From NCBI GenBank assembly GCA_026936335.1, contig JAPMXV010000052.1, positions 434,001-498,000 of the forward strand: a DNA stretch of 64,000 bases, given 5' to 3'. The position numbers were made by a program, and so were the translations under genes. The DNA comes from Mantamonas sphyraenae STR306. Its lineage: Eukaryota > Protista > CRuMs. Under the pieces are notes generated by a model, which was not told the origin of the DNA, did no database searches, and worked only from the letters and a program-made list of their open reading frames with translations. Of the stretch, positions 402 to 59,126 are shown piece by piece. Within the stretch, counting starts at the first letter, position 1, and each line of letters starts with the position of its first letter.

Positions 402-1696
402 TCAAAGCACTTGCTCGGGCGTCCAGTGCCTCTGCACGTGGTATCCGTTGGCAAACGTCTGAGCGTCGACCGCTTTTCGACCGGCCACTTGCAGCTTGCT
501 TACATGGAGCACCTGGTCGTCCGCACACTTGACCATGATGCCATTGCGTCCCTTCTCCAGCCAGAAACCTCCCGCCGGCACCTTGTCCATATCTTGATCC
601 AACCGCTCGCCGTCCAGCACGCCACGCATGTGGTGGAACAGGATGCGTTTGTCGTTCCACTCTGTGTACACCCCGACGTTCTCCGCCAACGCGCGGAAAC
701 GTCGAAGCAGATCAGCACCACCGCTGGCCGTAAAGTCCAGCTTGCCGTCGCTCTTCTTCACCTTGGGCGCATGGCATGCGTACTCCTCGTTCTGCTTAAA
801 CCGCTGCTCGTAGTAGACGTCAAACGTCTGCAGCGTCTTAATCAGTGCTTGTGCTCCCTGTTCAGCAAGAAGCTCCTCCAGGGATCTGTACATGATGCCC
901 TTTGGCACAGCCTGCTCGTGTCGTGCATCCTGTGTTAGCCTCACAGCATGGACAAGATGCATTCTTCGCTTTTGCTGTTGCTTACCCTTCTCTCTTGGTA
1001 CAGCACTTCGCCTGCATCGAAGCGTTCTGCGCGATGATGACACCGTGTGTCGTGTCAGCAAACAATCACGTGCACCTCCCACACAGTGCTTGAGGCGACC
1101 CAAACATGGCGCTTGTTGCACATGTTCAAGGCACGCGTCGCTGGTGTGGGCCTGCATACACACTTACGTGGGTCGAGGGTGATGATGGAGACCCCGGTCT
1201 CCTCGTCGCCGTTCAGCAGGGTGTGGTAGATGGGCGCTGGGCCGCGATAACGGGGCAGCAGGGACGGATGCATGTTGATGCCTTTCCAGGGGAGCTGGGC
1301 GAGCACAGCAGGCGGCACAAAATAGCCAAACGAGACGACGACGGCGAGGTCGAATCCCATGCTCCCTCCGCTGCCGCATACAAACGGGACATACCAGTCC
1401 TTAAATCCCTCCGAGGTCGCTGGCATGGAATGCACCGTCAATCCCATCGACAGGGCCTCCACTTTGAGATGGCCTACGCTCATGCGCATGCCTCTGCCCT
1501 TGGGTTTGTCCTGCGGGCAAACGACCTCCAAGCGCCCCACCACTCCCCTCGCTCGCTGCTGCTCCGCATGCAGTGCTCGAAGCGACGCCGCACTCACGTT
1601 GTCCGACCCAAAGAACAGGACGTTCCACTTGGACGGCGTGTGCTTGGCAAACGAGTCCAACTCCATGCGGCACGTCCGCGTGCCGCGTGCAAACAT
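402..1696 (-). CDS. MTFMT: Methionyl-tRNA formyltransferase, mitochondrial type (3 exons)
   Basis: Motifs VLFFGSD, DLAVVVSFG, INMHPSLLPRYRGPAPI, ETGVSII; spliced exon 1026-986 gives RFDAGEVLYQ; C-terminal HAPKVKKSDG and LQVAGRK. Start codon uncertain. Confidence 0.9.
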
Positions 1697-1829
1697 CCCT
1701 TGCCTCGAAAAAAAGCTTTTGTTTTTGTGATGCACACTGTATTTTGCAAATGAGTGCGCGCAAGCGCAGCGAGTACACACAGAGCTTGTAGTGTCAGTGA
1801 CTGCATGTGTGTGGGTTTGCGCACAGACT

Positions 1830-2151
1830 TGACTTACCATTATGCTTCGTCCCAATGGTGGACATGCGCGTGCGCCCGCGTGTTCGCGGGCGCACGCGCA
1901 TGTCCACCGCGTCTCCGCTTGGGACTCACGATTTCTTATCTTGCGCGGAATGAAGACCGCCCAGAAGTGGACCATGATGTTTCCATCACGGCCTGATGAT
2001 TTCCTCCGATGATGGCCAGGGTGCTTTGTCCCTCGACCCCATTTGTTCCCCCATTTTCGTCGATCGCCGTTCAGCTTTTTCCACCTGTGGGTCGCGCTCG
2101 CTGATGCGCGACAACTCGCATCGTTTCTCGCCATTCCTCAATGTCACCTCT
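1830..2151 (-). ncRNA. Candidate omegaRNA region of the Fanzor2 locus (boundaries unknown)
   Basis: Non-coding interval directly 3' of the Fanzor stop with several stems (24-bp hairpin; tgatg/catca 1975-1988; gtcgcgc/gcgcgac 2091-2112; gatgcg/cgcatc 2103-2122). Fanzor omegaRNAs lie 3' of the ORF. Inference. Confidence 0.4.
1857..1908. repeat. Perfect 24-bp inverted repeat with 4-nt loop
   Basis: ggtggacatgcgcgtgcgcccgcg (1857-1880), tgtt, cgcgggcgcacgcgcatgtccacc (1885-1908); outer gtcccaa (1849-1855) and ttgggac (1919-1925) can extend the stem. Confidence 0.97.
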
Positions 2152-4643
2152 TCACTCTGGCTCCTGCAGTTTGCTCCTGTTTGCCTGCAACACTCCAGCC
2201 GTAGCTTGAATGTCCCGCAGTCGCTTCCGTCCGCACTTGCCGCACTTGAATTCCTTCGCTGCTCCCACTGTGTTCACATACCCGCACGCACTGCATGTGC
2301 GTGTCGTCCACGCTTCATCGGCGATGACCATAAAACAGCCATGCTCTGCGGCCCTCTGCTTGACGATCTGCAGCAGCTGATAGTGTGCAGCATTCTCCAT
2401 CATGCGCACCGCGGGTTTGCGCAACGTACGCCGCTTGCCCTTGGAATTCACTTTGCGCACGAGCTTGGCCACACGCAGATGAGGATACAGCAGAGTGTTG
2501 GTGTTCTTGGTGAGCTCGTCAGCGATGTGGTAGTGAATTGCCTTGCGTTTGGCCTTCTTGCGCTTCTCCAGCTTGTGATACTTGCGGCGCAGCCTTGCGA
2601 GTGAAGGTGTTCCACCTCTGTTCTCGATGCGCTCGCGGATGGCCTCTTTGCGCTTCTTCTTGGTGAGGGCGCGTACTCGCTTGGTGCTCCTCTCTCCCTT
2701 TCTGTCTCGTTTCCATCCAGGATGTCTCTTGTCCATTGCACTCTGGATGGCGCTCATCGGCCGATCGAACCGTTGCATCAGCTTCTCGTGGTTGTGCCCG
2801 AGCAGCAACACCTCACCCGCCGTGCTCATGGCCGTGATGAGGGTCCTTCCTCCCGGATCTGCTGCCTTCACGTTGTGGACATCCAACTTCTTGATGGCTT
2901 TGACTTTGACCTCGTAGCACAGCTTCAGCTTGAACTCGTGCAAGTAGCGGTCGTACATGATCCTGACATCGTACCGGGGCTTCCACCTTGCTTTGCCAGA
3001 GTACTCAAACATGCTGGGGAACTTCAAGCCGCGTGCGTCGTGTGTTCCAAGTGGCATCACACTGGCGAAACCGGTCGTTGAGAAGACTGTGACGTGCGAG
3101 ATGCGTGTGAATCTCTGCTTTCCCTTCTTGCTCGCAAAGAACTGGAACAGGTGTGCCTGGAGCGACACACTCTGCTGCCGTTGGTTCCTATTGCGCGTTC
3201 GCAACTTGGGCCACCTGTTCGTCTTCTGGTAGGTATCCCATGCCCGTTTCACTGTCTGTCGAGCCTCTCGAACCCCGTTCCAGAATGGTGTTCTGGGGAA
3301 CTTCAGGTGGCGTGGCATCAACAGCTCGTCCAGTGTGGCCTTGCGCTCCCTCAACTTCAGCGCGTTGGCCGCAAGCTCATTCCCGTCGTTGCTCCACTTC
3401 TCAAGTCGTTCCGGTGAGTACGTGGCCATTATGACCAAGTTGTAACCGTAGCGAGCAGATTCGAACAGACTGTGTAGGAAGCGACGTTGGACTGGCCTCG
3501 GCCGAAAGTTCAACGTTCTGGAACGAAAACGCCTGTTGCTCATTAGATGTGTGTCTTTTGGCAGTTGTTCCAGGTGCTTGCGTTCCAGTCCATCGTCTTT
3601 GAGGTCGTCCGGAATGTCACTGAGCATGTGCTCACTCAGTGCTGCCTGATCGACCTTGAACGGGATGCGCATCGTCTCATCCGGGGGCAACGTGTCCACG
3701 TTCTTGGGCAGCGTAGTTGGTAGGCGCTGGTAGGCACTTGCGAGAGACTCAGTGAATAGCTTTCCAAGCTTGGAATGCTGCTGGCGTTGTTGGTCGTTGT
3801 GCCGCGCAAGCAATGCAGCAACGCCTTCGACCCCAGCCGAAAGCAGGGCCTCGGCAAGGGCGACGGCTTCCTCCACCTCTGTATCGGTCTTTGCGGAGGC
3901 GAGCAGTTTTTCGAGGTTGTCAATAGGGTCGGCAGCTCCGTCTAGGGCGTCTGCGGCAGAGGAGTTGGTGGGTGAGTGGGCGCTAGGGAAGATGCTAAAG
4001 ATGCTGACAGCCGCTGAAGCCCTCTGCAAAGCAGCCAACACATTTACAACACACACACACACACGTACCTTCGTCTTGGGCGTCCTTGTCTGCCTGCCTG
4101 CGCTTCGACTGCTTCGAATCTGTTTTTTTTGTTGTTTCGTTGCTGTGTTGGCTTCAGCTTGCACACATACGGACGCACAGAAAACACTTACCTTTGCCCT
4201 TGCCCTTGCCCTTGCCCTTGCCCTTGCCCTTGCCCTTGCCCTTGCCCTTCTTGAACTGAGCTGCGCGCTCCAGCTGTTTGTGGTTGCGCTTGCGTCGCCG
4301 TTTCCCCTCCCCTTGTGGACGTGTGCTTGGCCCTTTTTCCTTGCGATCCTTGTTGTACGACGCCGCTTTGGTGGCTGGTTTCTCCGTGAGCGTAGAGAGC
4401 AGCTCCCTTTCTTCCTCGTCCAGGAGTCTCGTCTTGTACTGGAGCCCCATGCGACGTGAGCCCGCGCGGGACTCGCTGGTAAGGTCCTCGAGGACGTCTT
4501 CTTCTGGGACGAACTCGTCGCCATCGTGGCTACCAGCGTCACTCGCCGAGTAGGGCGTCGAAGACGAGGTGTTCTCCATCTCCACGGACATGTTGATGTT
4601 TGACGAGGAGGATGCAGACAAGGAGGAGGAGGAGGAGGATGCA

Positions 4644-4686
<43 letters not shown>

Positions 4687-5116
4687 TCGTCGAGGTCTGC
4701 TCTATCTCCACGGACATGTTGCTGCTTGAGGTGGAGGATGCAGACGACGAGGAAGACGCACTCTGCGTCTCGAGTTGTATCTCGTCGCACGTGGGCGAAG
4801 AACGGGCGGAGGAGACGTTGAAGACCGTTTCGGATTCCGCCCGCGCACGCTTCGACGCGTCGTCGGCGCTTGCGCTGCTGCTACGGCGCCGTTTGGACTT
4901 CTCTTTCTTCACCTGCCTGGCATAGCGTGCTTCATCCCTTCGCTGGCGACGGTTGGACCGTACGCACCTTTGGGGCGCATGACCACTTTGAAACTGCGCA
5001 GGTGGCGATTCCGACTGCTCCCTGTTGCCTTCAGAGTTTAAGCGAGGGCGCAGGACAATGAGAAACCAGATCACAATGAGAATGATGTGGAAGTGGTTCT
5101 TCATGGGCACTTTCAT
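2152..5116 (-). CDS. Fanzor2-type (TnpB-like) RNA-guided nuclease, spliced; exons ~5116-4192, 4119-4069, 3950-2152 (~924 aa if ATG 5116)
   Basis: N-terminal core RSRTLNFRPRPVQRRFL...ARYGYN; RuvC-I AADPGGRT (D 2859-2857); LLYPHL; rearranged E in ADEAWTTRTC (2316-2314); Zn finger CSAC...CGKC; RuvC-III RLRDIQA (2214-2212). Introns gtaagt..cag (4191-4120) and gtacgt..cag (4068-3951) are both phase 1 and join ORF 4154..5341 in frame to ORF 2152..4542. Start uncertain. Confidence 0.88.
4194..4247. repeat. (TTGCCC)9 coding microsatellite, poly-KG in Fanzor2 exon 1
   Basis: Direct read of the sequence. Confidence 0.95.
4644..4685. repeat. (GAC)14 microsatellite, Ser/Thr run on the minus strand
   Basis: Direct read of the sequence. 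Confidence 0.95.
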
Positions 5117-5380
5117 TGGCTCTCGTGTCGCCTTGGAACAAGGTGATTGGTGCTCAAGCGTTGCATCAGTTTGCCATGAACCGAGAGGCAGGAAACACGA
5201 AGGATGCGTTGTATCAACGTCAAAGGATGTGTGACAAGAGATTATGGCAATGGCGCTTGCTTTCATGCTCCGAGTGAGGCGCCTAACTTCCGCACGCACC
5301 CAATTGAAAACCCCTGTACGTGTGCGCACGTCAACTGCCACCCCATCCTGGTCTCCATCCCGCTGCAGGTAGCCCTCCTT

Positions 5381-20119: not shown

Positions 20120-23100
20120 ATGAGCGAGCATACAAAGCAAACAAAGCAGAAAGGCCAAAGGAAACGTAGGCACAGCAACATCGTCGTTGACCACGACGAT
20201 GAGGACGGCCTTTCCGGTCACGAGAGGGGAGACCAGAAGCGGTCTCGCCACCACGTGTGCGCTTTCCCCCCATTGCGACAGTGTGCTGCAACTTCAAGAG
20301 AGATTCTGCAATGAGTGTGTTCTTTGTGGAAGCGGCCAGGGTTCGGGTTCTGTGGTGGACGGGTACACTGTGCAGCGCCGCAGCGCGCGGAACAGCAACA
20401 TCGGCAGCTCCGCCATGTTCCAGGGTGCAGCAGCGGCGCTTGCCGCATCTGATGATGTCATGGACACAGAATGGGAGTCTGGTGGGATTGAGGAGTACAG
20501 CGACGACGACTACGACGACGAGTACAGCGACGACGACGAGGACAGCGACTACGAGGAGTACCGGCCGGTCGTGACCCGGCCGCGGAAAATGCGCCAACCA
20601 GTTCTGTTGCCTGCAGCCGCCGAGGAGGTGGGTGGTGACTTCCAACTGGCACCTGGACGACGAGGAGGCAGTGGAAAGGCCAAACGGCAGAGGCAGATCT
20701 TGCAGGGCTTTGGCATCGAGTTCCAGCAGGGCTTGACTCAGCTGGAGGGTGACGTCGTGGTGTTGGTGGACGTCAGTTCAATCGTACACACGCGATTGGA
20801 GGCAGCCGCACGTGTTGCCGACGTACCCGAGGCCAAGGTGCGTGAGCTGGTGACGCAGTGTGTGGAGGCCGAAAAAGCGGCCACCGAGCTCCGCGTCGAC
20901 CTCACACTCGCGGACAGCGTCAAGTTTATCCTCATTTGTGATTTGAAACCTGAATTGATCAACGAGCAAGCCCACTCAGTGACCTTTGGCACGCACGTGA
21001 GGCGCATGGAGGGTACTCTGGCGCAGGTGAACACCATGTGCAAAGCTCTCCGCAAGGTGCCCAAGGACAAGGACGTCAGCCTCGACCGCTTGGCGCAGGG
21101 GCACCATCTTTGCTTGAGTGGCCAGGCGCAGGCAGCAGTGTATCATGCTGTGCAAGACCTCTGCTCGCGACACCAGATTTACGAGCTTGGAAATGAGATC
21201 GCCGATGAGACGCACCTGTGCTGTGCGGATGACGTGAAGAACAGGGTTGTGCAGTCGTATGACCAGCAGGAGAACGTCAGCTTCGTGGTGCCACTGTTCG
21301 ATACCGATTGGGGGTACAACATCACCAGGCACCCAGTGTTTTTGCTTCACCGCAAGCTTGGCTGGGCCACGGTTCTGCCGGAGGTGGGCAAACTGGTTTG
21401 CCTGGTTGCTGCGCTGCAGCTGTCCGGTGATATCGAGGCAACCGTCAGGGCACCGCGTCGTAGCATGCTTTCCTTGGAAGAAGAGAGCCTGCGCGAGCTC
21501 CTGGAAAGCGGGGAAAGTTTGCTGGGGTACATTTACGCCCCAATCCTGGACAACGACACATCCATTGCACATCTACTGCAAGGTGCATGTGGCACACAGC
21601 GCGCGTCAAATCACCGTCGCCTGGTGGAGCAACACGCACAAAAGTACCTGGCTAGTGTCAGGCTGTACCTGATTCAGTTTGGGTTTGACGATGCAACCAT
21701 CAAGACTCTGATGTGTTTGAATTCATGGCAGGATGTGTTTGGTACGGGTGGAATGTCCGCCCACCTGGACACAGAGGGATTGCCTGGGGCGCAAGTGCTG
21801 GGCGTTGCCGAGCTGGACGGCGGCGGCGGGCAAGTCGATGCCCTGTTTCAGAGATACGTCGCACAGTATGCCGTGGCTGAGCATGACACATTGCGTGAGG
21901 CACGTGTGTTGCCACCAGGAGACGTGGTTCAGCACGCACAGGCGCTGCGCGGTGCACAGACCCTCTCCACTGTGCTGCCTGACCTGAAGGCCAGTGTGGT
22001 TTCCCGTTGGGAAGCCAGGGAGCCACACAAAGCACTTGCTGTGCCATTGACGGACTTGCAATCCCGACATGCCTACCGTCTGACCGTTGACTCCACCGCT
22101 GTTGGAATGGAGGGCCTGGCGGCGGCTGCGGTGGGGGACGCAGACACCAGCTACACCAATCCAGCCAGCATGTACAACAACATGCTGTCAGTCCGGAAGT
22201 GGAAGAACCTGTGCCGCAAACACGTTCCAGGCAAGTTCCGCCGCCAGCAGCTGAGCCATTTGCACGGCGTGCTGGACACCGATACTTGCGAGCAGCTCAA
22301 GGACACGGATTTGGGAAACGCCATGATGAAGGAGGAGGTGGGTATCGATTTGTCCATGAGCGTGTTCATCGGCAGTACGCAGCAACTGGCCAGCTTGCTG
22401 GGAGGTGTGGCACCGAGCAACGAGGAGGCGGCGTTGTGGAACACAAGGGTCAGCGACGCCATCGACCACGTCTACGGATCGCCACAAGTCGATGGTGGTG
22501 CCCACGAGGGCTCACGGTTGGACTGTGTCATTGACACCATCTTGCCAGAGCCAGAAGAAGACGGCGACTGGGAGGTGTTTTTGGGGCTCACCACACCCAA
22601 GCTCGACTCAGACCAAACAGAGCGACTGGCATCGGGCTCATGTGTGGTGGAGCTTGGTACGCTTGCGGAGCTGCGCAACTCTGCATTGATCACTGAAGAT
22701 GCGGTGGACCAGCTGACGCTAATGGGGCAGGCCTTTGGCGTGATCGCTGCGGTGCAGAGTGATCTCCTCGAATGCTGTCGGCTCGAACCACACAAGGAGC
22801 TCGCGAATGTCCTGTCGGCCACGTGCCAGCTGAAGAAGGGTCATTTCTACTTGAAGGCACCCCCGGATGTGAACATCACAAGCGAGGCGGATTCCATGTT
22901 CCCCGGCTTCATTCCTGTGACGACAGACCTCGTGCTGAGCAGGACACACAACGGTGACATCGTGGCCGAGTACTTGGACGAGATGGGTAACGAGGCCGCG
23001 CGCGAAGGGATGGATGTCAGTGGACTGCCTTCCGGTACGTTTCAAACCCTGTGCGAGCGAGGTGCTGCACACTTGGTCGCCGGATGGCGGGTCATGCTGA

Positions 23101-25598
23101 TGGGCCAGGCCAGCGACAACATTGTGGACCTGGCAGTGGCATCCCACGACCTCGAGCGCCGCGATGTCCTGGATTTCGTCAAACGCATGCACAAGGACGA
23201 CGATGACGATGGGGACTCGTACACTCCAGACACACCCACAAGCACAGCATGCGAGCGTGCTGTCGTGGCCGTGCTGCGCTCAGTGGCGGGTGTTTCCTTG
23301 GAGAGGTACAAGACACTCATGGGCAAGAAAGACTCCAGCACAGCCTCCCATGCCTGCGCGTTCAAGCTTGCCAGTGCATGCAACTCCACACGGAAGCTGT
23401 ATGGGGACAAGCACTCCTTCAACCTGCAGCTTGCCGCTGAGCGAGAGAAGCTCTTTGGGCGATGGGCGTTGGGCGCGCTGGTGGACGGGTTGCTGGCGGC
23501 ATGCAGGGAGGAGGGGGTGGACAGTATGATGGCCTGGTCTGTTCTGCGTGGAGCCGTCTCCTCGACCCCGATTGCGTGCCCAGAAGGCGAGTACTTGCCG
23601 CCGCCGTGCGAGCAGTGCATTTCAGGCCGCACGGACTGTGAATGCGATGTCGGCAATTGGTTACACAACGCAAAGCTGAGTGACAATTCCCCGCAGGTTC
23701 ACGGCCTGCGATCGTCACTTGCCTGGCATATGATGATGATGGTCGAGGACGACGGCGAGAGCGGCTGCAGCAGCAGCCGCCTGTTCCCGCCAAACGCCAT
23801 CGAGGCGATGCACGTGTGTGCCTCAAGGTGCGCAACCGGCACTGCTCGCATTGTCACCTACAACGACGACATCATTCCCGCGGGAGAGATGGGATCGTAC
23901 ACCGACGCCTTGTTTCTCGCGGCCTTCGACATCTTTCGCGTGGTTGACCCATCGCACGCCCCCCGGATTGCGAAAACACCCTTCATCAACGGCGAGCACA
24001 TCTCGGTCCGGATGTTCTCCGCCGTCCATATGCTTCACGTGCGGCACTGGCAGGTGCCTGCCGGGACAGGGCAGCGCCGGCTGTACCATCTGGAGAATCT
24101 CATCCTCCCTCACGAACGCCTCTCCCTGTTCCCCACCCTACGCTCGAGCCTCCACCTTCTCCGGAACCCTGTTGCAACGGCGACACCACGTCCCACCGAC
24201 GATGCAGAACTGCTCCGGTTCTTGCAGGGAGACAAGCGGATCCTCGACGATACACCAGATGCTGTGCCTGCACAATCGTCACCGTTTGTGTCTCACAGCA
24301 ACCAGCGGTACACCTTTTCGAGAAACGGCAAGGGCGCCCTGGAAGGCACATCGAAACGGGGCCGCGACGGAGACGCACACACGGAGCAACAGCGCAGCCA
24401 ACGACGACTCATTGACCGTGTTGCGGGTGTGGTTGTCAGGCTGTGCCAGATTGGCATGTATGTCGCCTCCTACCAACACCAGGAGGGCCGGTTGGAGAAC
24501 GATCCCCAACACACGGCCCATGGTCACGGAGTGGCACGAACTCAGACTGCTGCAGTACACAACCTGCTCCGCAAGTGGCTCCCGCGTTCGGCCGAGAAGA
24601 TAATCCGTCTGGGGTTGTGCCCACAGTCACTGGAACACACGCGGCGTCCGCACGGCGTTGTCAGCTCGTTCACACGGCTCATTCCGCTGAGCACCGAGGC
24701 GAACAATCGATTGCAGCTTGTGGGCATGGACCCGGGGATCTCGAACGCGCCATCTGCTTTGTGCATCCCGAAGAAGAAGCCCGCCAAGGACGACGACAAC
24801 CCGGTCCACTTCGCAGATGCCTGGCGCTTCTCGCCACCCTCGCTAGGGGCCTTGGAACGAAAGACAGGACTCAAGCGCGACAATGCACAGCTCTCTGTGA
24901 CGGTGCATGAGAAGATGCAGGTCCTGCGCAGCAAACGTGCCAGGTTGTTTGCGGACGTGCACATTGCGGCCAGGACTGGACGGGTGCTGAGGAGCCAGTG
25001 CAGCGGCAAGAACCTGGCGTCGTCTGAACAATGTTCATCCGCTCATGTGCATGACGGATGCAACCAGAGTGGCCACAGTGAGACGCTTCATCGACGCGAC
25101 AAGAACGGCAAGGTGCGCAAACTCCGGGAACGCTGGCTGGCGCAGGTACGGGCGACCGAGAAGATGCAGTTGGAGAAGGGGCAACTGCGACGCATCACAC
25201 TGCTGTGTATCGGTGACGGATACAAGGGCGGCCGAGGGGGGGTGAAGAAGCTCGAAGCTCTGGCCGCGCACAACATGCTCGTTGTGCGTGTAAATGAGTG
25301 TAACACAACGCTGCGATGCCCCACATGTGGCAGTGTGCACGAGAGCAAGCACGGCAATGCCCGCACCGCGCGGGTCAAGTACTGTACGCGATGCAAAATG
25401 CACCGGAACCGGGACTTTGCCAGCGCACAAGCAATCGCGAACAAGGTGTACGCTGCGCTTCGCGGACACACCATATGGTGCATGACCAAGGTTTGGCAAC
25501 GGAGTCAGATCGGAAGGACGTTCCGAAGCAAGATTGGTCTGCCAGAGGACGTGGACGGCAAGGCAGAGACCCTGGAGGCGAATTCGAGTGCAGGCTGA
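20120..25598 (+). CDS. Giant Fanzor1-type RNA-guided nuclease (~1,790-1,800 aa)
   Basis: Uninterrupted ORF 20187-25598. RuvC-I LVGMDPGISN (D 24729), LLCIGDG, rearranged E in VRVNECNTTLRC (25296), Zn finger CPTC...CTRC, RuvC-III RNRDFASAQAI (D 25413). Probable exon 1 at 20120-20254 (MSEHTKQTKQKGQRKRRH..., NLS-like) joined by phase-0 intron gtgtgc..cag 20255-20375; alternative start ATG 20199. Confidence 0.88.
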
Positions 25599-52778: not shown

Positions 52779-54981
52779 TTATCCCTGGGGCTGGGCACCC
52801 ACACCACGGCCAGCACGCACCACCTCGTCCACGAGGAGAATCTGCGATGAGATGACCGAGGCCGAGTGCAGCAACTGGCGCTTGACGCGGTAGTTGTCCC
52901 AGATGCCGGCGTCGGCGGAGTCGACGGTCTTGCCCGTGTCGATGTCCAGACCGAGATGGGTGTTGCCCTTGAGCTGCTCCTCCTGCAGGGTGACCAACGA
53001 GTCGAGAGCGTCAAAGCCGCTGTTCTCGGCAAGGACCTTGGGCACGACGAGCAGAGCGTCGGCAAAGGCCTGCACACCCAGCTTTGCACGACCAGACACC
53101 TCATCGGTAAACTTGGTCAGCTCGCGGTGGGCAAACACCTCAAAGGCGCCTGCTCCCGGCACGAGCTTGTTGTCCTCGATGGCGTTCTTCACAGCGCGGA
53201 TACCATCGCGCAGGGCATCCTTGGTCTGGGCGATGCTGTGGGGCGTGGGGCCCTTGATGAGGATGGTGCACGAGAAAGGGTTCTCCACACCCTCCACGAA
53301 AGTGTACTTCTCCTCGCCCAGTGTGGTCTCCTTGACCGAGCCGGCAAAGCCCAGCTTGCTCTCGTCCAGATCTTCGAACGAGTTGACGGCCACACCGCCG
53401 CAGGCCAGCGTCAGGCGCTCCATGTTGCGGCGCTTTGCGCGGCGAATGCCCATGATGCCCTCCTTTGCCAGCATGTCCAGCGAAGGCGGGTCAATGCCCT
53501 TCTGGTTGATCACCACAAAGCCGTAGTTCTCCTTGTCGCCCGAGCACACCTGGCGCTTCAGCTCCAGGATCTGACGCACACGGTCGTCTGTAAACTCGCG
53601 CTCGGCGTCAACCAGTGCGTTGCGCTCCTCGGCCGATTTCCAGCGGAACTCCGAGTTGACCTCACTGTGTGGGGTGGACACACGCGGCACGGGAGTGGGC
53701 ACAGGTGGTGTGAGATGAGCGGGCAATGATGGGAGAGCAGGTGGGGCACGGGGCAATGCACGGGAGCGGGCGAAAGGCAGCGCGCCAAAACGCTCGTGGC
53801 CAAAGGGCGAAAAGCGTACCTCTTCTCGTACTCCAGGGAGACGTTGCATGTGAGGATGAAGCAGTTCTCGAGTTGCTTGGGCATGTCCGGGTGACGCACT
53901 CCGTGGTCAAGGACAAGACCCTTGATAAGGGAGGTGTCGAGCTGGTGGTCGTGCTGCATGTGCATGATCTCGATCATGAACAGGTCGATGGGACGATCGT
54001 CACGCTGGATGGTGGTGACGGCGTCGACCACGTACCCAGCAAGTGTCTCTGCAAGCTCGTCCTTGACCTGTGCGTGCAATGGGGAGGCAACCCGAGGCCA
54101 TGTGTGAGTCAGCGAGCTCGGGACATTCCGGCAAGGGGCAGGAGGGCGAGGCTGCTTGGCGGCAGCGAAACGGACCTTGGTGAGCAGGGAGGTACGAGCC
54201 ACATTGAGGAGCACCTCCTCATCCAGGTTCTCGGGCTCTACAGCATAGTCGTCGAGCAACTCGAGGCATTTGAGCTTGGCGACCTCGAAACCGTCGGAAA
54301 CAATGCGCGGGTGAAGACCCTCGTTGAGATGGCGGCTGGCCTGCTTGAGAAGCTCGGCAATCATGAGGACGCAGGTGGTAGTGCCGTCGCCCGTGATGTC
54401 GTCCTGGGCTGTGGCTGCACGAGCAATCATGCTGATGGTCGGGTGGTTGATTTGCTGTTTGGCAAGAACGCAAGAGAGAAGGGCGCGGAAGGGCGGGTGA
54501 GCGCAATTCAGGAAAAAAGCGCGCGAAAGCACTCTGCAAGGGGCCCTGACGCATGGGGATGCCCATCTGCACGACACTTACCATCTCGTGCAGCAGCACT
54601 GAGCCGTCCTTGGTCAGCTTGATGTCGCCAGCACCGCCCACAAGCATCTTGATGGTGCCCTTGGGTCCCAGGTTGCTCTTGACCACATCGAACAGCACGC
54701 GCGCAGCCTGTGTGTGTGTGTAGCCACGCGGTTGTGTCAGACAACGATGCACACACCGTCTCTCTGTGTCTGTTTGTCTTTTGTGCTATGGTTGGGTGTG
54801 TGCCGCCTTTGCCGGTTGGCAATTGGCGCTGGAACACGCAGAAAGCAACGGAACGAAACGCATCTTGCCCAAACAGCTCCTACAATCGCACACAACGTAC
54901 CGTGATGTTCATGGTGATGGCCTCGCCCTTGCGGACAACCTCGGCACCCGGTTTGACTTGACTAACAGCATGCGAACTCAT
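52779..54981 (-). CDS. CCT6: T-complex protein 1 subunit zeta (multi-exon)
   Basis: [64 protein letters not shown]. Confidence 0.97.
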
Positions 54982-55141
54982 CGTGAATGCTTTGGGCACA
55001 GAGTACGGGTCAGCACAGAGTGCATTGGATGTGATCAAACGGGCGTTCTTTGAAAATGGGATGGCAGCGCATGCACACACACACGACCACACACACACGT
55101 GGCACAAGCAATGCACACGGCGTCACCTACCTTTTGGTCGA

Positions 55142-56683
55142 ATGGAATTTGGATGGAGCGGCGTGCGCGCAAGGTGGCCCAACTCCGCTTCAGGCCAGAT
55201 GTCGCGTGCGATACGCTCGCTGGCGGACCTCGGCCAGGCGGACACAGTTCAGGAGGCGTGGGACATTTGTTTGGGCAAACAGACGACAGAACGCAAGAGC
55301 AATGCGGTTCTCTTCCGCACAAGAGGCGACAACACCGGTGCTCACGTCGGCTATCTCCACGTGCAGGTCAGCTTTGCGATCACTTGCGCATGATGTCATC
55401 TGTTGAACGTGCTTCCCACCAACACACACACACACACTCACTCACACACACACACACAATCATCCACAGGGCCAGCAGTTTGCTCTGGCTGTGCACAATG
55501 GAGACGACATCGCCAACGCCTACGTGTTGGGTGACGCTGACCTCGCAGATGCTCTACAGGAGTATGCTAGTGTATTGGAACAGGTTGGTTGTTTGTGTGT
55601 CTTCCCTGCCACTCCTCTGTTTTGAGAGTACGCCCACCCCGCAGTGTTCCCGAGAATCCTCACACGCCACGCAACAACACACAGCGTCGTAAACACTGCC
55701 ACACCCTCGACGACCTGCTGGTAGAGGTAGAGGACGTGCTGTTGCAGTCGCTGGCATCCTCCTCTTCCTCCACATCTCTTGTACATAATCACAAGGAGCT
55801 GCCCGACGAAAAGTTCTACAGCACCGTCCTGGCTGAGCTTGATCGCGTTGGTTTCCACAGGCTGCAGAACGCATCACAAGATTTGCGCTCTCTGGAACTC
55901 GTCTGCAAGGACAAGCGAGGACGCAGACACATCCTGTCTCTCTCCCTGCCCACAAATTATCCGCAGGCATTGCCTCTGTGCCGTGTGGTCGCTCCTGAAC
56001 AGTTCGTTCCTCGTAGCGACGACGCCATGGACGTCGACACCTCCTCCTCTTCCTCCTCCTCCTCCTCCTCTTCTACACACCCTCCTGTCTCTTTGAAACC
56101 AGAATCTGGGCTGGATGCACTTCTGAGGCAGTTTGCGACGTGGCTAGAGCGCTTCCAATCCCTGTGGGATGAATTGGACGATCTGGACACACACACGTGG
56201 GTTATCGAACCCGAGCGACCCACTCGCGACATGTGCTACCGCCGCATAGCCATGGGGGATCATTGCAGCGTCCATCTGCAGCTGGATGTGCAGGCGCCAC
56301 GAGCTATTCCCGAGTGCCAGTTCACAGGCCCAACTCAACTCGCCACCGCATATCGCCACTCCTTCACTGAAGGACTCTCTTCGTGGCAGCGCTCTCGTAG
56401 CGTGCGTGACAACCTGCAACGCATCCTAGACGTCCAGTTCCCAACACGTGAGGAGGCAGCCGAGATGGACCTGAACCTCGAGTGTGGCATCTGCTACGCC
56501 TACCGTCTCCACAACGACGCTGTGCCCGACCGCATCTGCGACAACACAAGCTGTGCACGGCCCTTCCATCACGCCTGCCTTTACGACTGGCTCCAATCGC
56601 TGCCAGACTCGCACCAGGCCTTCAACACTGTGTACGGCACCTGTCCCTACTGTAGCCAGGCCATCAGTGCCAAGCTGGCATGA
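55142..56683 (+). CDS. FANCL: E3 ubiquitin ligase FANCL (spliced; start uncertain)
   Basis: WDELDDLDTHTWVIEP, RRIAMG, C-terminal ECGICYAYRL..PDRICDN..C.RPFH..CLYDWL..GTCPYC. Confidence 0.93.
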
Positions 56684-56741
56684 CTCCCACATTTGTCCAC
56701 CCATGGTCTGTTTGCATTCGCATTTCCTCTTCTCCCATCAC

Positions 56742-57535
56742 TCACAGCAGCTGCTGCAGCGCTTGCACAATGTACGGGTAGCCCTCCTTGGACGATGGCG
56801 ACGGAATCACCTCCAGCACACCCTTCTCGCCGTAGTACTCCACCAGTGGCAGCGTTTGCTTCTTGTACTCCTCGATACGTCGTTGGATCACCTCAGGCGT
56901 GTCGTCGGGTCTCTGGATAAGGTCTTCACCGGTCTCGTCATCCTTGCCCTCCACCTGCGGCGGGTAGTACTGGATGTGGTATGTACGACCGCTGGCCGGG
57001 TGCACGCGACGGCCCGTCAGTCGCTCCATGATCACCTCTTCCGGCACGTCCAGCTGCAACACAACCTGGAACGGTTTGCCCATCCCGCTCAGAATCTCGT
57101 CCATGCCCTTTGCCTGTGGCACAGAGCGCGGCACTCCGTCGATCACAAAGCCTTTGCCTTTCTGCAGCGTCTTGTCCACGTGCGACGCCATGAACTTGAC
57201 CATCAAATCATCGCCCAGCAGCTCTGTGTCCCTACGTGTCAGCATGTTTTTGCCGTGACAAAACCCTGCCCTGCCCTCCCGACCTCCTTTCTGCTCTCTC
57301 CCCTGATTCATCCTGCTTCCGTACCTCCTCGCGACATGGCTTCCTTCACCGACTGGCCAAATTCGGTCCCCTCCTTGATCTCCTCGCGCAAAAGGTCTCC
57401 AGACGACAGATGCACCAGCCCAAAGTCCTTGATGATCTCTGTGCACTGTGTGCCCTTTCCCCCTCCCGGCGGGCCCAGAATGGCCACCCTCAGCGGTGCA
57501 TTTGCTGCCGCAGCAGTGCTCGTTCTACGAAACAT
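56742..57535 (-). CDS. Adenylate kinase, long/LID type (2 exons)
   Basis: ILGPPGGGKGTQ, HLSSGDLLR, DGVPRSVPQA, RRVHPASGRTYH, LIQRPDD. Confidence 0.95.
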
Positions 57536-57601
57536 GGCTATGCAAATGAAAGCGGATCGTTTGGCTCGGACAGAGCAAAAAATCGATGCATTGTTCGCTG
57601 T

Positions 57602-59126
57602 TCATCTCCGGCCCGGCTCAAACAGAGCCGACTCGGGTGGGGAGCGCGGCAAAGGCGGAGAGGCCACCGGGTTTGGGCTCAACACGCCCAGGTCGAGGCA
57701 TGGTTGTGCACCCTGTTCGGCAAACAGGGCGTCCTGTACAATGGGGTTGTGTGCACGATCCACAGACGCCTCCACAGCCATCTCCTGCGGCACCATGGCC
57801 ATATGCATCATCACAGACGCACGCCACTGCGACATCTGCTCCTCTGTCGGCGTGTTGGTCACGCTCTCTTCGCCTGCGCCATACCACAGCCACATCCCGT
57901 CCACCGTCCCGTCTCGTGTCCCAGGCCGCTCCATGCCGTCCTCGCGCCCATTGGCGTCCACGGCCCCAGTTCCGTTCCCGCCCGCGTCTCCACTTGCGCT
58001 TGTGGCCACAGCCACGCCGTTTGTATGTACACCTGTGCCCACATCTACGTGCGGCGACAGTAGCAAGCGCGACATCACGTCTCCTCCTCGTGCCACACGT
58101 CTCGTGCCACCCTCGCCATCTTCGTCGTCGCCTGGGGCCTCCTGTGTGTCAGAATGCCCGTTGGTCCTTGTGGCCTGGTCCAGGCCCTCCTCATCCTCCT
58201 CTTCCAACAGGGAAAACTCGCTGCCGTCCAGCTCGCGCAAACGCCGCAACGCCGCAGGGTGATATATGATGCTGCTGTTGTTGTTGCTGCCCGCGCCTCC
58301 CGTGTGTCCGACAGTGCCCACAGTGCTTGCTGTTGCCGCCGTGTCCATGCTCCAATTCGACAGCACGCTAAGCCGGTCGCTTTCGCTGTGTGCGCTGGGC
58401 GTTTCCGTGAGAAGGTCCATTCGCTCGTCGCCCGTGTCGTGTGACTCGGCAGGCGACAGCAACGACGACGCCCCCTTCCCTGCGTACGGAGTCCATGTCC
58501 ACTCGTTGCTAGTGCGCACACGGTACAGCTCGTCCACGCTGCTCGTGCTCTGCAGCGGAATGCCCACGCTTCCGCTCACCGCGCGCGAAACGCCCGTCGG
58601 CGTGCCCACTGTCGAGGTGGCCAGCGACCTGCTGCTATGCACACTTTGTACAAGGCCCATGGCTGTGTATGCATGCGCTGCAGCTCCCCCGTATCCGCCT
58701 CCTGTCGTGCTGTGCCGCCGACCTTGGTTCAGAATGCTGCTGATTTCTCGCGCCGCCAGCCGTCTGTGTTGCGAATCGCGTTGTCGCCGCCCCGAGCGTC
58801 CTCTGTTGTGTCAGCACATGCATGTGTCCCTCTTCCACCCACCCCGTCCCGTTTCCACACCGCCATGGCTCCTGTCTCGCAAAGGGCCGCAGGAAAGGGC
58901 CAAGAGAACGGAAGCACACGAAAAAACGTCTTTGGCAGCCCCACCACAGAAAAAGGTGTGGATCTGTGGATAAGACGCCTTCCCATGCCTCTCTCGGCCA
59001 TGCCACGCACCTGTGTTTCGACTGTCGCTCACTGCTGCCCCCCGCGTTGCTGCTGCTGCTCTCCTCTCTATCTTCCAGTGCATCCATCGACGATGCGGGA
59101 CGAAGCGGCTCGGGGGCGACCAGCAT
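57602..59126 (-). CDS. Hypothetical disordered protein (probably 2 exons)
   Basis: 352-aa ORF extends upstream in frame to ~58800; probable upstream exon ending at a gtgcgt donor ~59010. No motif recognised. Confidence 0.45.

Follow-up and report, generated by a model that had tools for sequence, protein, structure and literature searches.

In eukaryotes, TnpB and Cas12 have their counterparts in the Fanzors, of which the compact ones are sought after for genome editing. To our knowledge, only a few Fanzor2s lie outside IS607 elements; those designated Fanzor2* are proposed intermediates on the way to Fanzor1. A Fanzor2* is a Fanzor2 captured by a eukaryotic transposon with terminal inverted repeats (TIRs) (Yoon et al. 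2023, PMC10711439), and the Fanzor2-encoding elements of Chloropicon and molluscs have been described as having "clear TSDs and (degenerate) TIRs" (TSD, target-site duplication). A DPG motif together with an alternative glutamate is the signature of the Fanzor/pro-Fanzor lineage (Yoon et al. 2023, PMC10711439), and introns and N-terminal disordered regions with a nuclear localization signal (NLS) are established Fanzor features. The guide RNA scaffold of TnpB, Fanzor1 and Fanzor2* is located at the 3' end of the element and includes TIR and TSD, while the guide is derived from the flank (PMC10711439). Unaffiliated Fanzors have also been reported (Jiang et al.). Here we describe an element in a 64,000-nucleotide stretch of DNA from Mantamonas sphyraenae STR306 (contig JAPMXV010000052.1, positions 434,001 to 498,000), called the window below; positions given without a contig are those of the window. 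The genome assembly is eukaryotic, 25 Mb in size and divided into 78 contigs, with ~58% GC. With a probability of about 75%, we read the element as a non-autonomous cut-and-paste DNA transposon, TA-flanked and with a degenerate 25-bp TIR and Tc1/mariner-like termini, whose sole gene encodes a 924-aa Fanzor2-type nuclease in three exons, that is, as a Fanzor2*. This reading is built on the anatomy of the element, its copy number, the intactness of its gene, the purifying selection on the protein, and the termini that it has in common with transposase-bearing elements.

A six-frame search of the genome yielded two further full-length copies, on contigs C58 (99% aa identity over the core) and C44 (79% aa identity), as well as more distant paralogs on C6 and C34. 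The repeat unit comprises 5318..1736 of the window (3,583 bp) and is 97% identical to the C58 copy and ~77% identical to the C44 copy (BLAST). Homology begins and ends at the same bases in all three copies, and the flanks are unrelated. The element proper, 5316..1737 on the minus strand (3.58 kb), consists of a single gene and contains no transposase. Its ends read TA-CAGGGGTTTTCAATTGGGTGCGTGC ... GCGCGCACTCATTTGCAAAATACAG-TA. The three copies and the C6 paralog, four related elements, have 8 ends in total, 7 of which are abutted by the dinucleotide TA; the exception is the right flank of the window copy, which reads TG. The general repeat search did not report a TIR, and no perfect or near-perfect inverted copy of the left end was found within 8 kb in any element; the TIR is visible solely as a match of 17/25 at fixed terminal positions, for which the binomial P is ~2e-5.

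The earlier note on this DNA, which had been made from the sequence alone, had set copy number as a check, and three intact copies at unrelated loci were found. Its observation that no serine recombinase or transposase is nearby holds in and next to the window copy. Its suggestion that the gene is possibly domesticated has to be given up, because the gene rides in a 3.58-kb transposon with three copies at unrelated loci. Judged from the sequences, a sharp-ended, TA-flanked, TIR-bearing repeat in three copies, two of which are 97% identical, with ends in common with transposase-bearing elements, is the signature of a recently mobile non-autonomous transposon and not of a fixed host gene.

The more distant relatives differ in their state of preservation. 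The paralogous element on C6 (~54240-58235, ~4.0 kb) has the ends TA-CAGGGGTTTTCATTTGAG ... TTTTGCAAACGACAG-TA and contains a 765-aa Fanzor2-type open reading frame (ORF) with an acidic C-terminal tail (SESEEEGSMD repeats) and an upstream exon encoding K/R-rich, poly-Ser and acidic stretches; its RuvC-I motif is DLG, not DPG. In the C34 paralog (C34:226545-228075), which is probably a pseudogene, the region shortly before the zinc finger is interrupted by either a frameshift or an intron that escaped recognition, leaving frames of 359 and 145 aa. Apart from the three copies, the site most similar to the left TIR (one mismatch) is C30:14031-14050. No Fanzor-like or transposase ORF follows it, and the neighbouring ORFs, one with weak AAA-ATPase matches, are on the other strand, so this site may be a solo end or belong to a different cargo.

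The gene is located at 5116..2152 on the minus strand. Joining its three exons with a local script gave a spliced model of 2775 nt, which translates into 924 aa with 0 internal stops. Database searches were run exon by exon, and the exons were joined solely for translation and for the ratio of nonsynonymous to synonymous substitution rates (dN/dS); residue numbers refer to the 924-aa protein. The open frame 2152..4542 (minus strand) matched the Cas12f1-like TNB domain of Pfam (PF07282, E 3e-12, above the curated cut-off), and the NCBIfam model guided_TnpB gave a sub-threshold match over most of the core. Column conservation was read from a 75-sequence alignment (A6) with the best library matches. 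The complete Fanzor-lineage signature is present in the window protein: DPG, relocated Glu, RuvC-III Asp, zinc finger and a TnpB-like WED/REC/RuvC fold. The canonical RuvC-II site reads LLYPHL and lacks the Glu.

An exhaustive HMMER profile search of 1.84 billion representatives identified 8,599 relatives, all of them remote (best E 2.8e-34, mostly over the RuvC half), while a word-based search with the 515-aa core returned nothing at E <= 1e-3. No close relative was found among ~15 billion proteins. The best library matches are metagenomic proteins, two of which, with HTH_OrfB_IS605 plus TNB, are encoded on long contigs where small ORFan genes surround them; in layout, these two contigs look like giant-virus DNA. 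The best matches themselves match ApmFz2 best, i.e. ApmFanzor2 (Acanthamoeba polyphaga mimivirus L79, 9b0l). This protein was also the best hit when the family profile was compared with the PDB sequences (E 1.1e-22; next chain 4e-8; ISDra2 TnpB 2.7e-4). No Fanzor1 chain was listed in that comparison, for which the detectability of the Fanzor1 chains in the library was not checked.

The structure of the core was modelled with AlphaFold2 (AF2) from the 75-sequence alignment (predicted local distance difference test (pLDDT) 81, predicted template modelling score (pTM) 0.79). ApmFanzor2 9b0l was the top hit of this model in Foldseek (E 3e-18). VIA-align gave ISDra2 TnpB with Z 21.6 and 20.9 and ApmFz2 with Z 20.3 and the longest alignment (379 residues; 320-380 residues overall). 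No Fanzor1 entry was among the top 50 of either structural search. The model aligns almost end to end with TnpBs of 360-410 aa (VIA-align), and judged from this overall fit, large Fanzor1-type insertions appear to be absent; Fanzor1 has a larger, divergent core, with kinked REC2 helices and a WED insertion bearing a TDG motif as hallmarks. We conclude that the core is probably of the Fanzor2 type, an assignment which is derived from best matches and not from a rooted phylogeny with curated Fanzor1 and Fanzor2 references. It appears to represent a very divergent, new Fanzor2-type lineage that has no close relative in public protein collections. By analogy with its relatives, the protein would be an RNA-guided nuclease.

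The two introns, both of phase 1, were read from the sequence and are supported by comparison of the paralogous copies. Intron 1 has the donor AAAG/GTAAGT at 4192/4191 and the acceptor acag/ATTC at 4120/4119; intron 2 has the donor GAAG/GTACGT at 4069/4068 and the acceptor ccgcag/ACGC at 3951/3950. An alternative acceptor at 4024/4023 was rejected by reading, as it is in the wrong phase and is soon followed by a stop. The GTAAGT donor of intron 1 is kept in the C58 and C44 copies. A 1-nt indel in an A-run between window and C58, together with poor alignment with C44, fits a non-coding intron 1. In C44, the counterpart of exon 2 is 108 nt long, in the same phase and with the same G/GTA(C/T)GTGTG donor. 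Exon 2 ends in a K/R-rich motif, RRSKRKKKDADAQGN in C44 and SKRRQADKDAQDE in the window, before G/GTATGTGTG. Intron 2 of the C58 copy has a 16-nt insertion that would disrupt the long ORF, and the C44 acceptor is a phase-1 cag/AG. Splice donors, acceptors and phases are thus conserved at 77% DNA identity (window versus C44), where synonymous sites are near saturation, and indels not divisible by 3 are confined to introns. The same three-exon model gives intact ORFs in all copies (window 924 aa, C58 912 aa, C44 960 aa). In none of the three do indels close the exon 1 frame, which starts from the same ATG in each; this ATG at 5116 is the first in-frame one and is in frame with the rest in every copy despite 18 nt of indels. 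Upstream of the core, exon 3 has no Met that is conserved between copies (M419 of the window is Val in C44), and exon 3 is therefore not a free-standing ORF.

The same organisation was found in the C6 paralog, which has only 27% aa identity in the core: a K/R-rich, poly-Ser, acidic upstream exon is followed by a phase-1 intron and a helical region before the core. The intron contains (TG)n and is located at the homologous place (TTAG/GTGGGT...CGCAG/AC). Because this layout is shared at 27% identity, the extension and at least one intron are old features of the lineage.

Most of what the earlier note had said about the gene was borne out. Its D/E/D triad and zinc finger correspond to D690, E871, D905 and C878/C881/C895/C898, all on invariant or near-invariant columns. 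The segments it had called Fanzor2-like, LLYPHLRVAKLV and TLRKPAVRMM..AHYQL, fit the family consensus ILLPxF....M..K / TVRxML..SHYxFRQRL of the 75-sequence alignment. Its assignment to the Fanzor2 type agrees with the best sequence and Foldseek match (mimivirus Fanzor2), the compact TnpB fold, and DPG plus alternative Glu. The phase-1 junctions at 4192/4119 and 4069/3950 around a 51-nt exon are exactly so in the sequence, with the same sites and phases in the paralogous copies, and the expected product of ~920 aa became 924 aa in the joined model. The S-rich, acidic, K/R-rich and (KG)n region it had seen is there, and the term "eukaryotised" is apt: the gene has two introns and encodes a long extension with NLS-like clusters, and the paralogs have conserved both features.

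The TnpB fold begins at about residue 465 of 924, and everything before it is extension. These ~460 aa contain several NLS-like K/R clusters, poly-Ser, an acidic stretch, (KG)n and a conserved helical linker; the composition of the N-terminal part is marked by 21% Ser, K/R clusters, an acidic stretch and (KG)9. The extension doubles the protein, and its layout is conserved across paralogs down to 27% identity, which is a new feature. By comparison, the NLS tails described to date are short, far below this length. Exon 1 had no family match in Pfam, and the only Pfam match of the C6 N-terminal exon was a sub-threshold, low-complexity one to SR-25. The helices of the linker were predicted at low confidence (AF2, 5-sequence alignment, pLDDT 52), and a search of the protein atlas with this pre-core region gave no significant look-alike (scores 0.85 or less). 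The poly-Ser (TCG)n tract (4590-4760, minus strand) and the (GGCAAG)n tract encoding KG (4193-4250, minus strand) vary in length among the three copies, which accounts for most of the 924/912/960-aa differences; the (KG)n tract of C44 reaches about double the length, with GT interspersed.

Selection was estimated by the Nei-Gojobori method between the window and C44 copies unless stated otherwise. For the core (aa 411-924), dN/dS was 0.12 at a synonymous distance (dS) of 1.29. The pre-core part of exon 3 gave 0.19, aa 201-308 of the extension 0.21, and the Ser-rich and K/R-rich parts of the extension 0.45-0.57. Exon 1 overall had a dN/dS of 0.39 (extension range 0.21-0.57; dS ~0.9-1.6). By these estimates, the core is under strong purifying selection; the extension is also a constrained coding sequence, to a lesser degree than the nuclease. 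The first 35 codons are conserved at the nucleotide level, since their dS is 0.05 and their dN/dS above 1. Between the two young copies (window and C58), dN/dS was 0.4-0.6, derived from few substitutions (dS ~0.02-0.06).

Serine recombinases are absent from the assembly: the Resolvase family (PF00239) had 0 matches genome-wide, while it matched in 12/14 control genomes. At least 19 copies of Tc1-like DDE_3 transposases were present, as well as at least 32 TNB-domain matches, most of them weak and in giant frames of ~1,500-2,000 aa. With up to 3 mismatches, the left-end 20-mer of the window element was found at 13 places in the genome, versus 0 for the reversed control. These places include the three copies, the C6 paralog element (~4.0 kb), several giant-ORF elements, and a 7.9-kb element on C11, C57 and C2. 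The C11 copy of the latter (C11:271138-279007; copies 95-98% identical) begins CAGGCGTTTTCAATTGAGCGAC and ends ...GCGCGCTGTTTTGCAAACAGGAAT; it encodes a 388-aa DDE_3 transposase (PF13358, 92.8 bits), followed by a 1,638-aa giant ORF with a weak TNB match. The left ends of the window element and of the C11/C57 elements match at 18/22 positions. On the right, GCGCGC..TTTTGCAAA is common to the window element and the transposase-bearing elements, and related right ends are also found on the C6 paralog and the giant-ORF elements. The C11-type Tc1-like transposase would thus be the obvious candidate to mobilise the window element in trans. The most abundant Tc1-like family (six near-identical copies) was rejected as a partner, as it has different ends, TGT(G/A)TTGTGGCGTTCAGCGCGC.

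Comparison of the window protein with the giant ORFs by phmmer, blastp and a hidden Markov model (HMM) built from the 75-sequence alignment gave no meaningful similarity. Since the giant ORFs are dissimilar to the window protein and the ends are nevertheless similar, two very different nuclease cargos are found on related ends. A TA/TIR element whose ends are common to Tc1-like-transposase elements carrying giant Fanzor-like ORFs appears to be new. At least 25 giant frames (~1,480-1,977 aa) have a weak C-terminal Cas12f1-like TNB domain (28-36 bits). The giant ORF within the window (20187-25598, plus strand) has its own, more symmetric TIR, TACAG(A/G)CTGTTCGGTTCAA(G/A)TTGA. An 8-bp direct repeat, AAAAATCC, borders the C11 copy of the 7.9-kb element; such a repeat is unexpected for a TA-duplicating Tc1 element. 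About 400 bp past the right end of the C44 copy, outside the shared repeat unit, a Tc1-like DDE_3 transposase gene with a degenerate TIR-like end was found (C44:~207100-208560, 95.3 bits).

At both non-coding ends, the element is far better conserved than at its coding synonymous sites, of which ~70% differ between window and C44 (0.6-0.75). In the ~300-nt 5' block, this amounts to nucleotide-level constraint, as expected of a transposon end, a promoter or a 5' untranslated region (5'UTR), and the start codon ATG 5116 is therefore provisional. The 3' non-coding region is a candidate reRNA, because the scaffolds of TnpB, Fanzor1 and Fanzor2* occupy the same place. The z-scores of its minimum free energy against shuffled sequences were -6.7, -5.6 and -2.3 in the three copies. 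Rfam gave no family match for this region; sub-threshold miRNA-like matches on the hairpin and the Ser-codon repeat were taken as chance. RNAalifold found 1 compensatory pair in 122, from three sequences of which two are nearly identical, which are too few for covariation.

Some further observations concern the 3' region. The loop of its perfect hairpin (1881-1884) reads AACA in the window and the reverse complement, TGTT, in C58, although the copies are otherwise 97% identical. At the same site, C44 has a shorter hairpin of different sequence. A block of 65-130 nt (1940-2075, minus strand; ...GGAAATCATCAGGCNGTGATGGAAACATCATGG...TCTGGGCGGTCTTCATTCCGCGCAAG) recurs elsewhere at 76-85% identity, namely at C42:393622-393758, C41:14364-14426 and C41:15571-15633, with neither Fanzor-like coding sequence nor TIR; the two C41 sites are 1.2 kb apart, in an apparent tandem gene pair. 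The block may act as a small RNA or as a 3'-end signal, or it may have been captured as a fragment.

The following mechanism would account for these features. If the gene is expressed and spliced as modelled, the 416-nt 3' region with right TIR and TA would be transcribed as a guide RNA scaffold, whose 3' end would read into the flanking DNA and thereby acquire the guide. The extension would carry the nuclease into the nucleus, where the protein, if active, would cut guide-matching sites next to a TA, for instance the donor site left empty by excision; TA would belong to its target-adjacent motif. With the sister copy as repair template, the element would then be preserved or spread. Tc1-like DDE transposases whose elements share the CAGG(G/C)GTTTTCAATTGAG end would supply the transposition itself in trans. 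The coordinates of all features are collected in Table 1.

Table 1. Features of the Fanzor2*-like element and its gene (window positions, listed from the left end of the element)
Feature	Position	Strand	Remarks
Left flanking TA (presumed target-site duplication)	5317..5318	-	TA directly before CAGGGG in window, C58, C44 and C6; flanks beyond unrelated
Left TIR CAGGGGTTTTCAATTGGGTGCGTGC	5292..5316	-	17/25 versus reverse complement of right end
Conserved 5' block	5020..5318	-	left end, probable promoter/5'UTR and first ~30 codons; 84-95% identical to C44
Exon 1	4192..5116	-	aa 1-308 plus 1 nt; K/R clusters, poly-Ser, acidic stretch, (KG)9
Intron 1	4120..4191	-	GTAAGT...ACAG, phase 1
Exon 2	4069..4119	-	51 nt; DSKQSKRRQADKDAQDE, NLS-like
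Intron 2	3951..4068	-	GTACGT(GT)n...CCGCAG, phase 1
Exon 3	2152..3950	-	aa 326-924 plus stop; intact in all three copies
Conserved helical/linker region	3535..3948	-	aa ~327-464, between low-complexity tail and core; dN/dS 0.19 versus C44
TnpB/Fanzor2-type core (WED-REC-RuvC-TNB)	2155..3534	-	aa ~465-924; AF2, Foldseek, VIA-align
RuvC-I Asp D690 (AADPGG, DPG motif)	2857..2859	-	alignment columns: D281 invariant, P282 nearly invariant, G283 invariant
Alternative RuvC-II Glu E871 (IADEAW, IADEAWTT)	2314..2316	-	invariant column E462; aligns with NEYLTT of ApmFz2
Zinc finger CSAC...CGKC (C878, C881, C895, C898)	2230..2295	-	invariant columns; Pfam TNB domain
RuvC-III Asp D905 (RLRDIQ)	2212..2214	-	R904 = column R495, invariant; D905 = D496, nearly invariant
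Conserved 3' non-coding region, candidate reRNA/omegaRNA scaffold	1737..2151	-	416 nt, stop codon to right end; 82-93% identical to C44
Perfect 24-bp hairpin, 4-nt loop	1857..1908		repeat analysis
Right TIR (degenerate) ...GCGCGCACTCATTTGCAAAATACAG	1737..1761	-	homology of the three copies stops here; 17/25 versus left TIR
Right flanking dinucleotide TG	1735..1736	-	TA in C58, C44 and C6 copies

Downstream of the element, a methionyl-tRNA formyltransferase-like gene is located at 405-1666 (minus strand), with Formyl_trans_N and Formyl_trans_C in two frames. Because its domains are split over two open frames, it has at least one intron. Its start codon is ~70 bp past the right end of the element, and the putative guide of the window copy would therefore enter its 5' region.

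Several points weigh against our reading as a mobile Fanzor2*. The TIR is weak (68% identity), and in C44 it is out of register by a 1-nt deletion, so that only 6/25 positions match without gaps. The TA is only presumed to be a target-site duplication. A copy number of only three is a weak ground for present-day activity. The right ends of the transposase-bearing elements differ at their outermost bases, and end similarity is the sole basis on which mobilisation in trans is proposed. Splicing, start codon, expression and guide RNA are features that we infer from the sequence. The first ~30 codons are conserved as nucleotides and not as protein, and the hydrophobic stretch that they encode would be unusual in a nuclear protein; the coding sequence may thus begin elsewhere than in our model. 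Finally, the choice of Fanzor2 over an early Fanzor1 or an unaffiliated branch follows best-hit logic and not a rooted phylogeny with curated references.

This last point leads to the first of the alternatives, that the protein is not a Fanzor2 but an early-branching or unaffiliated, Fanzor1-like Fanzor, as would be expected in a eukaryotic TIR transposon. A TA/TIR element is the classical context of Fanzor1, unaffiliated Fanzors were reported by Jiang et al., and the divergence of the protein is high, with remote profile matches concentrated in the RuvC half and an empty word-based search. However, ApmFanzor2 leads the PDB matches by 14 orders of magnitude and heads the Foldseek results, Fanzor1 is missing from the chains listed in the former and from the top 50 of both structural searches, the nearly end-to-end fit to small TnpBs speaks against large Fanzor1-type insertions, and the best library matches hit ApmFz2 best and sit on giant-virus-looking contigs. 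We therefore regard this alternative as unlikely, although it deserves to be kept in mind. The gene model has a rival of its own, in which the Ser-rich upstream ORF is a separate gene or non-coding and a Fanzor of ~500 aa, the typical length of Fanzor2s, starts inside exon 3. The junctions rest on sequence comparison, and the extension is of low complexity, is less constrained in parts (dN/dS 0.4-0.6) and has no Pfam domain match. Such a start would nevertheless need a Met upstream of the core, and none is conserved between window and C44 (M419 again being Val). In a copy whose dS exceeds 1, both introns still have GT..AG borders and phase 1. None of the three joined ORFs has been disrupted by the many indels, the pre-core region and aa 201-308 are under purifying selection (dN/dS ~0.2), and the C6 paralog has the matching succession of K/R-polySer-acidic exon, phase-1 intron and nuclease. 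A separate upstream ORF is thus improbable.

The two remaining alternatives accept the gene as modelled and dispute its mobility. A domesticated host gene, fixed at a single locus and no longer mobile, would agree with the purifying selection on the protein, with the introns and the long, host-like low-complexity extension, and with the lack of a transposase or recombinase both in the element and, among the DDE_3 matches, on this contig. It does not agree with three copies at unrelated loci that have identical sharp boundaries, TA flanks and a TIR, nor with the 97% identity of two of them (dS ~0.02-0.06), with ends common to transposase-bearing elements, or with non-coding ends conserved like cis-acting transposon ends; we consider it highly improbable. 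More weight has to be given to the view that the element is an intact-looking but now inactive relic, present in three copies by chance and devoid of current nuclease or transposition activity. The low copy number (3), the degenerate TIR, the TG instead of TA at the right flank of the window copy and the broken C34 paralog speak for it, and a dN/dS of 0.4-0.6 between the two young copies fits relaxed constraint since their split, if one allows for the few substitutions. Against this stand the catalytic and zinc-finger residues, which are intact in all three copies, the three ORFs, which have stayed intact despite frameshift-prone microsatellites, the long-term dN/dS of 0.12, and the 97% identity of two copies, which implies recent movement. 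A relic thus seems rather unlikely, and we retain the reading as a recently mobile, non-autonomous Fanzor2* transposon.

The locus adds a very divergent, intact, multi-copy member to the Fanzor2* set. It may also serve as a natural system in which the capture or exchange of RNA-guided nucleases by eukaryotic transposons and their co-function with a DDE transposase can be studied, and from its three copies, conserved 3' region and defined flanks, a candidate guide RNA and a candidate TA-containing target-adjacent motif can be drawn. As a tentative extension, which we regard as doubtful, two unrelated lineages of RNA-guided nucleases could be using the same Tc1-like termini within one 25-Mb genome, namely the compact Fanzor2-type core with its disordered, NLS-rich extension and the giant Fanzor-like ORFs of ~1,500-2,000 aa, some of them next to a DDE transposase; one transposon family would have swapped its cargo or captured both independently. 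The element would then be a living example of the proposed route from Fanzor2 via Fanzor2* to Fanzor1, and its extension, with its layout kept at 27% identity, a functional module for nuclear or chromatin targeting or for regulation, and not junk.

Among the known systems, the element is closest to Fanzor2* (PMC10711439), which is defined by a Fanzor2-type protein, a TSD with degenerate TIRs, and multiple copies. Here they are matched by a core classified as Fanzor2-type from its best hits, a presumed TSD, a degenerate TIR and three copies. Both have DPG plus the alternative Glu and a multi-copy, non-IS607 element with degenerate TIRs and a TSD (presumed here), and in both a conserved 3' non-coding region abuts the right TIR/TSD. 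In contrast to Fanzor2*, the window protein is about twice as long owing to its ~460-aa extension, its sequence is very divergent, and the ends of its element are common to elements with Tc1-like transposases and giant Fanzor-like ORFs. The characterised mollusc Fanzor2s are intron-free, whereas the window gene has two introns. Two usual properties of Fanzor2s in the sense of Bao & Jurka 2013 are not found: instead of an IS607-type element with a serine-recombinase TnpA, we found a single-gene element in a genome without Resolvase, and instead of a compact protein of ~400-600 aa, a core of ~460 aa within a predicted protein of 924 aa (912 and 960 aa in the other copies).

With the mimivirus Fanzor2 (L79, ApmFz2, 9b0l), the window protein shares the rearranged RuvC site, the zinc finger and a disordered N-terminus, which contains an NLS in ApmFz2 and NLS-like clusters in the window protein. 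ApmFz2 has 520 aa with a 64-aa N-terminal disordered region, as compared to 924 aa here, and the identity is ~18-19%; its gene has no introns and, in contrast to the window gene, is carried in a viral genome by an element of the IS607 type that includes a serine recombinase. The TnpBs of IS200/IS605 and IS607 (ISDra2 TnpB, 8exa/8h1j) have the same WED-REC-RuvC-TNB fold (Z 21-22 over 324-349 residues), and by analogy to them the guide RNA is presumed to come from the 3' end of the element. They are prokaryotic, mostly have the canonical RuvC-II Glu, lack introns and an NLS extension, and are associated with a Y1 or serine transposase, whereas the window element is of the TA/TIR type. Like Fanzor1 in Tc1/mariner and other eukaryotic transposons (Bao & Jurka 2013, PMC3627910), the window protein is the nuclease cargo of a TA-flanked TIR transposon and has an N-terminal extension and introns; unlike Fanzor1, its core is compact and TnpB-like, with no detectable similarity to the giant Fanzor-like ORFs of the same genome.

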